Source: Euprymna scolopes (lineage: Eukaryota). Taken from it: DNA of 64,000 nucleotides. This document shows, in pieces, positions 3,313 to 51,944 of this stretch; position 1 is the first letter of the stretch, and every line of letters begins with the position of its first letter. Under the pieces are notes generated by a model, which was not told where the DNA came from, searched no databases, and saw nothing but the letters and a program-made list of their open reading frames with translations. A program made the translations under genes and the position numbers. The stretch lies in assembly GCA_053919585.1 (NCBI GenBank), contig CM132805.1; one strand, written 5' to 3'.

Positions 3313-3420
3313 ATTGGCATCTTAGTCCAGTGTAGCCCGCCACACAGTAGCATCTGTATGATGCCAAATGTCGTGTACATGTGCCGCCATTAAAACAACG
3401 GTAAAACCTGCAATCAGTAC
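3313..3420 (-). CDS. EGF-repeat gene, exon H (TDCRFYRCFNGGTCTRHLASYRCYCVAGYTGLRCQ)
   Basis: 108 nt, cag acceptor, gtaagt donor, phase 1-1. Confidence 0.93.
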
Positions 3421-3679
3421 CTGAAAAAAAAATCATAAGTGCTGTTTGGATATTTACATGAGATTCCTTAATCAATATTTAAATTATATAGAAAAAAAGG
3501 CAAGCATGAAAAGTAATATGGTTAAGATTAAACTTAGAAAAGTAAAAGTACTAGTTGTTAAAACTGGAAAAGAAAAAGAAAAGATATTCTTGTAAAAAAC
3601 ATAACTTTATAACTTAAAATATTGCAACATTAAGCATTTTATTTAGAAATTCACTTAACATTATTCTTAATTATATGGT

Positions 3680-4290
3680 GAAAAGATGGTTCTCCCAAGT
3701 GTTCCAGATATTGGTGTGCTGTCTTTCACGCCGCAAAATCGCCTGTACACCCACGCAAGATTATGCTTTATATCTGGTGGACAGGTCGTCAAGTAGTTCA
3801 TCATTAACTACTACTAACAGGGCAAATGATCACCGGAGATCTTTACTCACAGAAATTGAAACGCGTGCAAGAGACATTTCGCCAGAAGAGCAAGCACTGA
3901 CGAATCGTAGAGGAGTGCTTTTTCTCCATGGCAGCACTAAGCTGTATGTCGCGCCCGTGGTTGAGGATACCATACAGCAATTTAGGTTGGAGACTTTGTG
4001 CCATCCAGCTTATTAGCCTGGCCTTGCGCCATCCGATTGCCACTTCTTACACTCCCGAGATAATCATCTTCGTAGGAAATCCTTCATCAATAAAGTAGAC
4101 TTGCGACAAAACTTTAACGGACGTTTTTGCGTCCAAACTTTCCAAGTTCTTCCGCAACAGGATTAAACAGCTGGAGACGTTGGTAAAAGATGCTGGATGT
4201 TGATGACGATTACTTCGAAAGCTAACTCTAAATTACACATACTGTGAAGCGTTTTCATTTTCTTTCTTTTAAAATGAACTTTTATTTTTG
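3680..4290 (+). mobile_element. Degenerate mariner (DD34D-type) transposase fragment
   Basis: NRRGVLFLH...LETLCHPAY*PGLAPSDCHF matches the mariner HPPYSPDLAPSDYHLF motif. Confidence 0.8.
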
Positions 4291-5765
4291 GTATATCTTT
4301 AAATTGATTTCTGAAATAACTTTAAATATTATACCGGCGTTGTTCTTGTGGCATATTAAAAAAAACAAACTAATAAGCTCAAATTGTTAATTCAACAACT
4401 ACGATTTTAATCATCCTACAACAACTGTTTCCGACTCGTTCAAATAGATGGCTTAATCACAATTTAAGAACATTAGAAGAGATATAAAATAGTTTTGTCT
4501 ATAGTCAAGATTGTCATGTTCTTTTTTACTTCCGGTTTTTATTTGTTTGGCTGAATAATTAGACATGGCCCAGCAATCAAGAAAACCATTCCTAACGCAG
4601 CGAAGTTGGGAGGAGTTAACGTTATTTGAGAGGAAGGTAATTATTAATCAGAATGGAACATATCTTGATTGTCCATGTCTTCCAAGTAAAAAATAAACAA
4701 ACAATTTTGACGATAACCGAATTTTTGCTTCTCCTGATTCAAACTTCTAAAACGTTGTATTTTATTGTTACTTGATGAGTTTATTTGTATCCCTTCTCTT
4801 TGGCGGGTAGCAGAAAGAAACATATATGCTTGGATCGAATTTTAAAATTTTAAAACATTTTGAAAGAAACATGCATAATTTTGAGTTGCTTTTTTGTGTT
4901 AATATAATTTGAACATAATAACCGCATACACATGTCTCAGTTTCCTTCCGTTTTTACTTCATTTTTTTAAATGAATTTTAACGTTACTTTTAATACCAGG
5001 CAACGCCGGGTACATATTCTAGTTTTAATTATAACACGGCTAATCTTGCCGCATGACTTTTAACTGATAGAACTTAAATTTCAAATTAAATTGCTCGTTT
5101 TAATATACACGAATATATTTAGTAATTTGATGTGTTATTTTTCCTCTATGTTTATGTGAAATCATCGAAGGAAGAAAAGTAAAGATTTACTTTGCAGAAT
5201 AAAATAAGGAATTGATATTTCCGCCTTATCTAATTAAACTACTTAATTATATATATTAGATTATTCAGCTGTTGTTTCGATCTAATTTCTGAACCGATGG
5301 AACTTGAATTGGACAAAACTACTGTGATAGGAGATAGATTCAATATTATCAGAGAGCACTGTAGAATGAAATATATGAGAAACCATTTTTGAAACGAAAT
5401 TCAAATTTCAGTAAACGAAACTGATATAAAAAATATTTCGGACAAATCAAGCCTTCATCAATAAGTTATAGGCATTTTTTTCCTTTATTATTTTTTGTCA
5501 TCTATAATGGTGAACGCCGAATATAGCTATTCTCTTCTGGTGTCAAATGAAGACGGCTTTTAATGTTTTGAGTTTGTGCAGAGAGAACATTACCGACGTG
5601 TGTAATAGATTCAATAATTTTACACCAGAAATTACAGTAAAATGAAAACTATAAAGAATCTTTTTGAAAACTAAATTCTGTGCTAGAAGATTATTTTTAA
5701 TAAATTAAAACAATATGAACTAATTGTTTCGGCCAACTTAAGCCTTCATCAATAAGTAATTTTTT

Positions 5766-5878
5766 AAATACCTGCAATCAGTACCCAAAAAAGAAAACAA
5801 ACAAAAAAAAAGACCGAAACATGGACATTATTTTAGTATTAAAAATATATTCCTTTTATCAATATTTCAACGAATAAG
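5766..5878 (-). pseudogene. Remnant of another EGF exon 5' end (GT ACT GAT TGC AGG TAT = TDCRY) with upstream intron
   Basis: Exon-start 14-mer identical to exon H start; acceptor reads tgg instead of ag; flank atcaatatttcaacgaataag shared with the intron upstream of exon G. Confidence 0.7.
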
Positions 5879-48910: not shown

Positions 48911-51109
48911 TACATGAATATATAAATCATGGAGGCTAAAAAGAGGACTGTTCCATTAATATCAGAAGTTGACAATGACTATCCAATATCAAAGCTTAAT
49001 GAGCAATGCTCTTAAGAAGATGAGTGCTCTTAGCAATGACAACACGTGCAGATTCTGCTGCACAGAGGTAGAGAGTGGGATCTATTTGACATCTAGCTCT
49101 AAGGTTATACTATACATATTGTATTGTCGCTAGGATCAACATATGTTGTATTCTTGGGTTTGTGTGTGTACGTGTCATTATTACTAATGTCTATAGTGGC
49201 CCTTTACTATCTGAACCCAAGTTCTATTTGTGACCTATTTGAGTTCTTACTAATGTCATGATCGTCTAAATGTTCATATGCGGGTGTGTGTGTGTGTGTG
49301 TGTGTGTGTGTGTGTGTGTGTGTGTGTGTGCGCGCGCGTGTCATATATGTATTTACCTTATTTTCACTGTGTCGTTGATCTTGGTCCATCTGTAAAATCA
49401 TCTTGTTCTTGGAGAGAAGCTGGAACCTGTTTGAACGAATGCATTTCACTCCAAAAACGATGGTTGGTTTTATATTAGTTTTTATTTCAATTTCCAGGTA
49501 TCGAATGCAGATGAATGGAAAATTGAGTTTCATTTGCTTGTGGTTAATTCTAATAGTCTCCATTTTTGAGACACGTCATCTCCCTCCCAAGGGTGGGGGA
49601 CACAACCGTTAACCCGTCCGCTCTTCTCTACGTCCAAATTCCAACTTCACGCTAATGTCCAGTTAACCTGATCACGTGAGAACCACGTCCTTCCGGGTCA
49701 GCTATTTTTAGAGCTACCGGTGAGACTTGTCCATTTTATAGCTCAATAATGTTTTGACAACTTTTATTAAAACGTCTTCATATCTCATCCTTTGTTTATC
49801 TAGCCAGTTAGATAGACAAATCGAGATAGATAGACAAATGGATATATCGATAAAAAGATAGATGAACAACGAATAATTTCTTGTGTTCCACCCACTACAT
49901 AACATAGAATGCGGCACAATAGACTTTGTATAGATTTCTGGATTAATTAAGGAGCACACTTTCACAATCGATTCCTATTGTTCCATGTATAAATCTTAAT
50001 GATGATCTGAAATCTTTAAATTCTCATATTTGTGGAAATACCTCAAAACTGTAACATTATCTACAGACATGTGTTTGCATCGCAATACTGACCCAGTTTG
50101 CTTCCCAACTTATGAAAAAAAGGATGGCAAGATTGTTGTTATTGCTATAAATATTGAGAGACAACTCATGCGAATGTGTTGCTGATTGCCGTTTAAGTGG
50201 AGCTTCAGAAACGGAAATTTGCAAATTTTAAAAACAAATAATATATTAGATTCAAAAACAAGTTATAAGTACTTAACTGACATGAGAATAATCTCTGCAT
50301 GAAACACAATTCTTTAATCAAAGAATCCTATATTATATTTTTCATGAGTTTATATGTGTGTATGTGGCTATGTATTTTTACAAAGTAAAAACGTTCAATG
50401 CAGAGTTGTGAAGTATTAGGGATTAAAAGAGATTAATTACCACAATGCCACCTTCTCATAAACTACTGGACCTATCTGGCTTAAATTTTGTATGGACTTT
50501 TACTATGATAAGTGTTTAACGAACTAGGTATTGTGAAATCCGTTCGATGCACAGTTAAGCATTGTTAGGGATTAGTCACCTCAACACTACATTTACTTTA
50601 GAAGTTTTCTCGGAAACAACTAGACCAATCTGGCTAAAATTTTGTATCGACCTTTTCTATAATAAGCTGCAGCGAATTAACTATTATGATATCTGCTCGA
50701 AGCATAGTAAGAGATTAATGGGGATTAGTTACAATGAACGCAAATTAAACCATATTTAGCAATCAATTTGGCATAAAGTACTCATTCTAAATCAACTCTC
50801 TATAACTTTTGCCCGTTTTTTAGCAAGTAAAGAGTTTAATCTATATTATAAAAATGAACATGCAGGTGTCTAGCTCGTTTCAATAATCACCTATGTAAAC
50901 TTAATTTTATGTACGGAAATGAAGAGGCGTAATTTTAATAGTAATTAATAATCATTATTTTTATTATTAAGGAACGAACAAATAATCATTTATGAAAATT
51001 TCATTGCTAAGAGAAAAGAAGCAAGGGCTAATCTTTATAATAACTGATAATAATACAAACGAAAGTAATTCTTTTATTTTTAAAAACTTTTTTACTCTTA
51101 TTCGCCTCA

Positions 51110-51740
51110 AACAAGGCATAGTGCCAATGGACTTAAGGGGCTACTATTTGGGACCATGTCTGCAGGGACACTACATAGAGAGTTGAGCAGTCTGTTCAAA
51201 TTACATTTAAGCTTCTGTATGTCAGTACAATCAGGGAAACAGGAAACCGAGAGAGAATTTTAAAGTAGAGCAGTTCAGGGAGAGAAACTTAAGAGTAGAA
51301 GGCCTTCCGGCATCTAGAGATCTCTATAGTGTAAAGGTAGGATTTTACTGCGTGTCAGGATAGTCAGGGTTATTTATGTCGAGGGGGGCACAAATGTTAC
51401 GAGTTCGTCGGACCACATCTCATTGAAGTACTTTTAAGTAGGCACAGGTATGCAACATTGCGGCGATAGGACAGGAGTTTGAGTTTGTTTGACAGTGCAG
51501 GGCCTGTTAGGTTGGAGACTCTTTTGTGGACCCTGTCTAAGATCGAGGGACTAATGGTAGATGCACCAGCCCAGTTGTGGTAACAATACTCCATGCATGG
51601 GCAGATGATGGCTTTGTAGTGATATATGATACTCTAAGGTGTTAGTAGTTTTCTAGCAGGGTAGAGAGAACAAACCTTCTTTGGCAATGTCTTCAATGTA
51701 TTGCAATTAATGTTGCATGTGAATGCTAAGCTGAGGAGGT
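51110..51740 (-). mobile_element. Degenerate CR1-group LINE 3' fragment
   Basis: MEYCYHNWAGAS...LDRVHKRV; homologous to 59340-60128. Confidence 0.8.
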
Positions 51741-51836
51741 TAAACAAAGAGCTTCAGATAGGATATTTTTAGTTATGACAATTAATAGTTGAGAAGATTT
51801 AGTCTTGGCACCACCGAGTGTTCACACAATACTCAC

Positions 51837-51944
51837 GTTCGCATCTTCGTCCAATGTAACCTCGCAGACAAATGCATCTGTATATGCTTCCATATTTTCG
51901 ACAAACACCACCATTGAGACATCTGCGAATCCTGCAATCAGCAA
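51837..51944 (-). CDS. EGF-repeat gene, internal exon A (ADCRIRRCLNGGVCRKYGSIYRCICLRGYIGRRCE)
   Basis: 108 nt, polypyrimidine tract + cag acceptor, gtgagt donor, phase 1-1, six Cys in EGF spacing. Confidence 0.93.

Follow-up and report, generated by a model that had tools for sequence, protein, structure and literature searches.

The minus strand of a 64,000-nucleotide (nt) stretch of the Euprymna scolopes genome (assembly GCA_053919585.1, contig CM132805.1; hereafter the window) carries a tandem array of eight exons, each encoding one strongly basic EGF domain. These exons belong to a real, spliced protein-coding gene, one junction of which, between exons 7 and 8, was observed. The gene is apparently unannotated, and it falls within a known kind, that of basic tandem-EGF secreted proteins. 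The secretion, the 3' architecture and the function of the product are what we infer beyond this.

The EGF exon array

A six-frame search of the window for the EGF cysteine pattern gave exactly eight matches, every one on the minus strand, and none was found in 30 base shuffles of the window. Each match lay within a single exon of exactly 108 nt. All eight exons were preceded by a pyrimidine-rich tract with AG and followed by a GT[AG]AGT donor (GTRAGT). All were in phase 1-1, with two bases ahead of the first full codon and one base after the last. The search and the reading of the splice sites confirmed the eight 108-nt, phase 1-1, GT-AG exons described in an earlier note on this DNA, and corrected its strand detail, as the gene lies on the minus strand. 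The exons, in the order of the gene, are as follows.

51837-51944, minus strand: EGF exon 1, 108 nt, phase 1-1, net charge +7, Tyr+Phe 3
42586-42693, minus strand: EGF exon 2, 108 nt, phase 1-1, net charge +7, Tyr+Phe 4
31729-31836, minus strand: EGF exon 3, 108 nt, phase 1-1, net charge +8, Tyr+Phe 5
22128-22235, minus strand: EGF exon 4, 108 nt, phase 1-1, net charge +6, Tyr+Phe 6
17304-17411, minus strand: EGF exon 5, 108 nt, phase 1-1, net charge +8, Tyr+Phe 5
10823-10930, minus strand: EGF exon 6, 108 nt, phase 1-1, net charge +4, Tyr+Phe 4
7287-7394, minus strand: EGF exon 7, 108 nt, phase 1-1, net charge +7, Tyr+Phe 5
3313-3420, minus strand: EGF exon 8, 108 nt, phase 1-1, net charge +4, Tyr+Phe 6

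The introns between them, from 1/2 to 7/8, measure 9143, 10749, 9493, 4716, 6373, 3428 and 3866 nt. Splicing the eight exons in order gave a chain of 287 amino acids (aa) with no stop codon and a unit period of 36 residues, and reproduced the junction residues H, H, R, S, F, L and R listed in the earlier note. The stop-free chain is little evidence on the exon order, because every cassette is symmetric and no combination of a last base with two first bases makes a stop. The joined chain has a net charge of +53 and consists of 17.4% Arg, 16.7% Cys, 13.6% Gly, 8.7% Tyr and 4.9% Phe, so that Tyr and Phe together make up 14%. It contains no N-glycosylation sequon. The linker from Cys6 to the next Cys1 was four residues long at all seven unit boundaries, and not three as first counted. 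The linkers begin with QH, QR, QS, QF, EL or GR, followed by T/M/R/I and D/V/I, and none of them holds a dibasic processing site.

The identity of the units as EGF domains was supported at several levels. The cysteine spacing C-x4-C-x5-C-x8-C-x-C-x8-C and a conserved Gly/aromatic pattern were present in all eight units, with 11 invariant alignment columns that included the six Cys. Every unit matched the Pfam EGF family PF00008 (best E 2e-7), with unit 1 scoring 29.4 bits against a cut-off of 21.5. An AF2 model of one unit (pLDDT 84.7) had two strands, and a Foldseek search of the PDB with this model returned EGF domains as all of its top 50 matches, with TM values around 0.6. Look-alikes in the ESM Atlas were nothing more specific than 'EGF'.

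The chemistry of the units departs from that of most EGF domains. Our recount gave the same ranges as had been noted before, a net charge of +4 to +8 and three to six Tyr/Phe per unit. Among 2604 EGF units taken from the 150 best profile hits, the mean net charge was -2.2 (standard deviation 3.2), and only 2.8% reached +4 or more. The residues around the cysteines were compared with 1931 EGF units of the same cysteine spacing. Arg precedes Cys2 in all eight units of the array, as against 1.4% of the comparison units, in which Pro holds this position in 82%. Ser or Thr precedes Cys3 in one of the eight units (the Thr of exon 8) and in 61% of the comparison units, so the O-fucose position (C2-x4-S/T-C3) is filled in the exon 8 unit only. 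The linker between adjacent domains of the comparison set has six residues in 87% of pairs and four in 3%.

The O-glucose motif (C1-x-S-x-P/A-C2) was found in none of the eight units. Matches to the Ca-binding EGF family (PF07645, EGF_CA) stayed under the cut-off, and the Ca2+-binding consensus was present in none of the eight. The units begin with x-T/x-D-C only, and the residue two past Cys3 is K, R, P or S. The missing Ca2+ consensus, the Arg in place of Pro and the lack of the O-fucose residue in seven of the eight units had all been claimed in the earlier note, and each was borne out. Its view that the gene is not of the Notch/ligand type is likewise supported by the domain chemistry, namely Arg for Pro, the missing O-fucose and O-glucose sites, the lack of a Ca consensus, and the charge.

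Transcription, selection and extent of the gene

Contigs from coded sequencing runs supplied the RNA evidence. A 196-nt contig from run X10 contained 79 nt of exon 8, then the whole of exon 7. It omitted exactly positions 3421-7286 (3866 nt), which are bounded by CT and AC on the plus strand, that is, by GT and AG on the minus strand. Contigs of runs X3 (232 nt) and X5 (159 nt) covered exon 7, broke off at both of its borders and continued with other letters, as spliced transcripts would. The earlier note had spliced the exons in order into one chain; in RNA, such joining was seen at the 7/8 junction only. Exon 7 was present whole in some RNA-type runs and studies, including 'mollusc metagenome' runs, and missing from others, and the sampled polyA run X16 had almost no reads on the EGF exons. 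The presence of exon 7 in only some runs and studies, together with its absence from the sampled polyA run, suggests that expression of the gene is restricted.

The exons also bear the marks of selection. In pairwise comparisons, the synonymous difference averaged 0.49 and the non-synonymous difference 0.26, and the ratio of non-synonymous to synonymous change (dN/dS) was below 1 in 27 of the 28 exon pairs. Four different codons (AGA, AGG, CGT and CGC) specify the invariant Arg before Cys2 in the units, and the residue was therefore retained across codon-family switches. The similarity between units continued into the introns, for 20-50 nt on the upstream side and as far as about 100 nt on the downstream side. 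Exons 3 and 5, which are 90% identical in nucleotides, form the most recent duplicate pair. A domain tree also recovered this recent pair, and placed the eight units in a single group (SH-aLRT 85). The grouping of the units, the similarity of their flanks and the dN/dS values therefore indicate that the array grew by local exon duplication, under purifying selection.

The number of exons given above is a minimum. Five runs of N were found in the window, all of them intronic, with one each in introns 1/2, 2/3 and 3/4 and two in intron 4/5. No exon spans a gap, and no similarity was seen between the two sides of any gap. The two runs in intron 4/5 (18669-19019 and 19021-19208) are parted by a single C at 19020, and are effectively one gap because only this one read base stands between them. 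Further 108-nt exons could be hidden in the gaps, and "eight" is a lower bound because each gap could conceal another. Only introns 5/6, 6/7 and 7/8 are free of gaps, and the order of exons 1 to 5 across the gaps is one that we infer. Two further segments bear on the extent of the array.

47733-47782, minus strand: broken ninth EGF fragment, adjoining the assembly gap 47785-47954 and reading ..PCINGGTCRRFGRIHR
58577-58640, minus strand: candidate first coding exon (predicted), with ATG at 58640 and 21 codons of signal-peptide-like sequence, MKIVWPVVLLLCASATSTLSQ, plus one base

In the ninth fragment, about 14 nt are seemingly missing after ..PCINGGTCRRFGRIHR by comparison with the intact units, which results in a frameshift. 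Its last Cys is replaced by Trp, it has no donor, and repeat-like sequence follows, reading ..FYGISTL.. in one frame. The fragment also differs from the eight intact units in showing the canonical EGF state, with Pro ahead of Cys2 and Thr ahead of Cys3. We read it as a pseudo-exon, or else as a real exon that became garbled next to the gap.

The candidate first exon lies 6.6 kb upstream of exon 1. Its donor, AAA|GTAAGT, is in phase 1 and would join it to EGF exon 1 through an Ile codon. A TATA-like box, TATTTAAA, stands 62 nt upstream of the ATG, and position -3 is an A. This segment was the sole hit of a filter for signal peptides with phase-1 donors in the 12 kb upstream of exon 1. About 0.3 chance hits are expected over this distance, because the filter yielded about three spurious loci in 128 kb. 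The assignment of 58577-58640 as a signal-peptide exon, predicted from these features, is suggestive only.

At the other end, no convincing acceptor for a terminal exon was found downstream of exon 8 in positions 1-3312, and the gene probably continues beyond position 1. Searches of the window by tblastn with 150 multi-EGF proteins gave no exon for other domains (DSL, LNR, ANK etc.). None of the DSL- or ANK-type domains that would speak against the reading of the earlier note was thus found in the 64-kb window, and the 3' end of the gene lies beyond it. The same search detected no C-type lectin exon in the window, although it is a weak test for lectins, and tblastn with the VWA parts of abalone proteins gave no VWA exon, a result whose scope is the window.

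The profile search covered 1.84 billion representative proteins. It returned generic multi-EGF proteins only, none above about 43% identity, and neither the protein itself nor an orthologue was among them. A word search with the open frame around exon 6 gave no candidate protein. When scored against its own profile, the joined protein reached 462 bits and would rank about seventh; yet no match exceeded about 43% identity, and the product, and with it the gene, therefore appears to have no entry in the public protein sets searched. The best array-level BLAST matches included abalone proteins at 42-43% identity. Units averaging at least +2 were found in four of the 150 best hits, which are listed here.

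Haliotis rufescens LOC124110407: units average at least +2; seven VWA domains, about 34 very basic EGFs, then VWA
H. rubra 'adhesive plaque matrix protein 2-like' (automatic name): units average at least +2
Pollicipes (goose barnacle) 'adhesive plaque matrix protein 2-like' (automatic name): units average at least +2
Xenia (soft coral) protein: units average at least +2

A search with the EGF part of the abalone protein gave generic EGF proteins about 30-36% identical and one basic protein of the sea slug Plakobranchus, in which basic EGFs are accompanied by LamG. Proteins with comparably basic EGF units were thus few, both in the best profile hits and in the sequences fetched later, and came from abalone, sea slug, goose barnacle and soft coral. 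Among solved structures, Notch EGFs scored best, and the mussel protein Pvfp-5beta (7qab) was matched by the unit profile at E 2e-12. The domain tree has 32 columns and an unresolved backbone, too few columns to judge a common origin of the basic EGFs of molluscs.

Several other features were seen in the window. A 24-nt minisatellite (541-2608, about 86 copies, 91% matches) lies just downstream of the last EGF exon; the long 'ORFs' in it are artefacts, because they are stop-free only through the repeat, in several frames. A 31-nt tandem repeat of about 25 copies occupies 9918-10705 in intron 6/7, ending 118 nt downstream of the exon 6 donor. The introns also hold a Tc1/mariner-type transposase helix-turn-helix (12913-13254, minus strand, Pfam PF01498) and reverse-transcriptase fragments (44306-46038, plus strand, PF00078). 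In RNA-type runs, the contigs reached very high depths, from hundreds to thousands, over two short segments (2860-2965 and 3504-3548), which had loose ends at either side and carried fixed mismatches; these segments probably derive from an abundant repeat or from transcripts of other loci, and not from the EGF gene. No Rfam match was found in the window.

Possible roles of the product

We propose that the window holds the 5' part of one minus-strand gene, which would consist of a probable signal-peptide exon followed by at least eight one-domain EGF cassettes. The cassettes arose by repeated local duplication of an exon with its intron flanks, and selection has since preserved their open frames, all of their cysteines and their strongly basic character. 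The product would most likely be a secreted chain of EGF beads, closely spaced with a 36-residue period and stiffened by disulfides. On each bead there would be some +6 to +7 charges, with six to nine Arg/Lys and four to five exposed Tyr/Phe. Outside the cell, such a chain might act as a structural or adhesive matrix polymer that binds or cross-links polyanions, such as sulfated or acidic glycans, mucins, chitin-type polymers, and mineral or other surfaces. The contacts could be of the Arg-anion and cation-pi kinds, and possibly involve Tyr/DOPA, as is thought for the basic tandem-EGF proteins of mussel plaques. From the analysis as a whole, we give a secreted structural or adhesive role about an even chance. 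The earlier note had offered a glue, egg case or thread, or else a cationic defence protein, and such roles for the EGF array appear plausible. It had also named octovafibrin as a tandem-EGF fibre, which agrees with the published description (PMC10336842).

Several points weigh against a structural or adhesive role. The RNA support is thin, with short contigs of low depth, and the sole observed junction (7/8) came from a run of unrecorded type. The expression data come from runs with coded names. The RNA covers part of the transcript only, and with the 3' end off the window, a transmembrane or other domain is possible downstream. The signal-peptide exon is a prediction only. The similarity to Pvfp-5 and to the abalone proteins is that of the generic EGF fold (at most about 43% identity), no better than that to Notch or SNED1. 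Moreover, the charge here resides on Arg (17%), while that of the mussel proteins resides on Lys.

The eight exons might instead encode a basic EGF stalk within a much larger multidomain protein, located in the matrix or at the cell surface, with LamG, VWA, C-type lectin, transmembrane or other parts beyond the window, so that the array would be a spacer or a ligand-binding run and not a bulk material. The off-window 3' end leaves room for such parts, the basic-EGF analogues are themselves multidomain (VWA x7-EGF x34-VWA in abalone, EGF with LamG in the sea slug), and the tandem-EGF proteins among the hits are for the most part large receptors or matrix proteins. However, the 64 kb contain no exon for a non-EGF domain, the candidate signal peptide joins the first EGF directly, and the units lack sites for glycosylation and Ca binding of the kind usual in EGFs of signalling or fibrillin-type proteins. 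We consider a stalk of this kind rather unlikely.

A secreted cationic protein of host defence or polyanion trapping, which would bind microbial surfaces, lipopolysaccharide or DNA, or coat mucus, seems improbable to us. The extreme positive charge and the aromatics on a cystine-stabilised scaffold, and the lineage-specific, fast-duplicating array, would suit it, and the presence of exon 7 in only some runs would fit an inducible or tissue-restricted gene. A polyprotein cleaved into 36-aa peptides was nevertheless rejected because the linkers lack dibasic sites, and the same lack counts against a defence function. The searches made gave no similarity to known mollusc antimicrobial families, and to our knowledge tandem EGF polymers are not a known antimicrobial format. 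Last, a duplicate that is decaying or without function, and whose exons undergo only incidental transcription, is highly improbable: its product would be absent from the protein libraries searched, its RNA depth low and one EGF copy beside a gap broken, all as found, but all eight exons keep an open frame, six cysteines and consensus splice sites, dN/dS is below 1 in all but one of the pairs, Arg survived the codon-family switches, and the 7/8 junction was correctly spliced.

Within the structural or adhesive reading, a more specific form is possible, which we put forward tentatively. The gene may encode a cephalopod-lineage, independently evolved, Arg- and Tyr/Phe-rich tandem-EGF polymer with tight spacing, missing from gene catalogues and without descent from Mfp-2 or the abalone proteins. 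Such a polymer would leave the cell as a glue, an egg-case material or a coating of sucker or skin, and would set by Arg-polyanion and cation-pi contacts. If the product is secreted into a material, an Arg-based design that is folded and not disordered would join the few tandem-EGF biomaterials, among them Mfp-2, Pvfp-5, scallop Sbp9 and octovafibrin. The array would then also offer a compact recombinant target (8 x 36 aa) for the study of charge and aromatics on a rigid EGF scaffold in wet adhesion or coacervation. It is a reasonable lead for biomaterials work. It is also a clean case of exon-by-exon domain amplification with the charge maintained by selection.

Comparison with known systems

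The mussel proteins Mfp-2 and Pvfp-5beta (PDB 7qab) are secreted, basic and Tyr-rich, and consist almost entirely of tandem EGF-like domains. The array shares this make-up as far as the window extends, with its eight consecutive basic, Tyr-rich EGF exons. Pvfp-5beta coacervates, and exposes Tyr and Lys on a positively charged face (PMC9314366). Tandem EGF repeats recur in marine adhesives and bind N-acetylglucosamine polymers (PMC11697411), and EGF and VWF-type domains are recurrent in limpet pedal glue (PMC7333891). The differences from the mussel proteins are also distinct. The similarity of Pvfp-5beta to the array is generic, with Notch EGFs scoring better; the array has four-residue linkers and Arg for Pro before Cys2; and its host is a cephalopod, which, unlike the host of Mfp-2, has no byssus.

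The abalone VWA-(basic EGF)n-VWA proteins, also from molluscs, resemble the array in their long runs of very basic EGFs, which have the NGG core in common with it and likewise place a basic residue ahead of Cys2. Their EGF runs are flanked by VWA domains, whereas the window has none. Their repeats are near-identical, with longer linkers and two aromatics per unit, compared with four to five here. In the domain tree, with its unresolved backbone, their units did not group with these eight, and the abalone proteins are uncharacterised.

Octovafibrin, an egg-tether protein that forms an EGF-only load-bearing fibre, has a signal peptide followed by 29 non-Ca-binding EGFs set between two C-type lectins (PMC10336842). 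The Octopus bimaculoides protein (XP_014771937.1), compared here by description only, shares with the array its tandem non-Ca-binding EGFs, the 4-5-8-1-8 spacing and a cephalopod host. It has a C-type lectin at both ends, while the candidate signal peptide here joins EGF1 directly. Octovafibrin was not among the hits obtained with the array. We rejected the possibility that the window holds the octovafibrin gene itself, for which a near-identical protein would be expected, but none exceeded about 43% identity.

The EGFs of Notch, Delta, Jagged, crumbs and SNED1 have the same fold and cysteine spacing, and gave the best matches in sequence and structure. Their chemistry is different. Notch-type EGFs average a net charge of about -2; Pro precedes Cys2 in 82% of them and Ser/Thr precedes Cys3 in 61%, and 87% of their linkers have six residues. 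In contrast, the units of the E. scolopes array carry +4 to +8, with Arg before Cys2 in eight of eight, Ser/Thr before Cys3 in one of eight and a four-residue linker at seven of seven boundaries.

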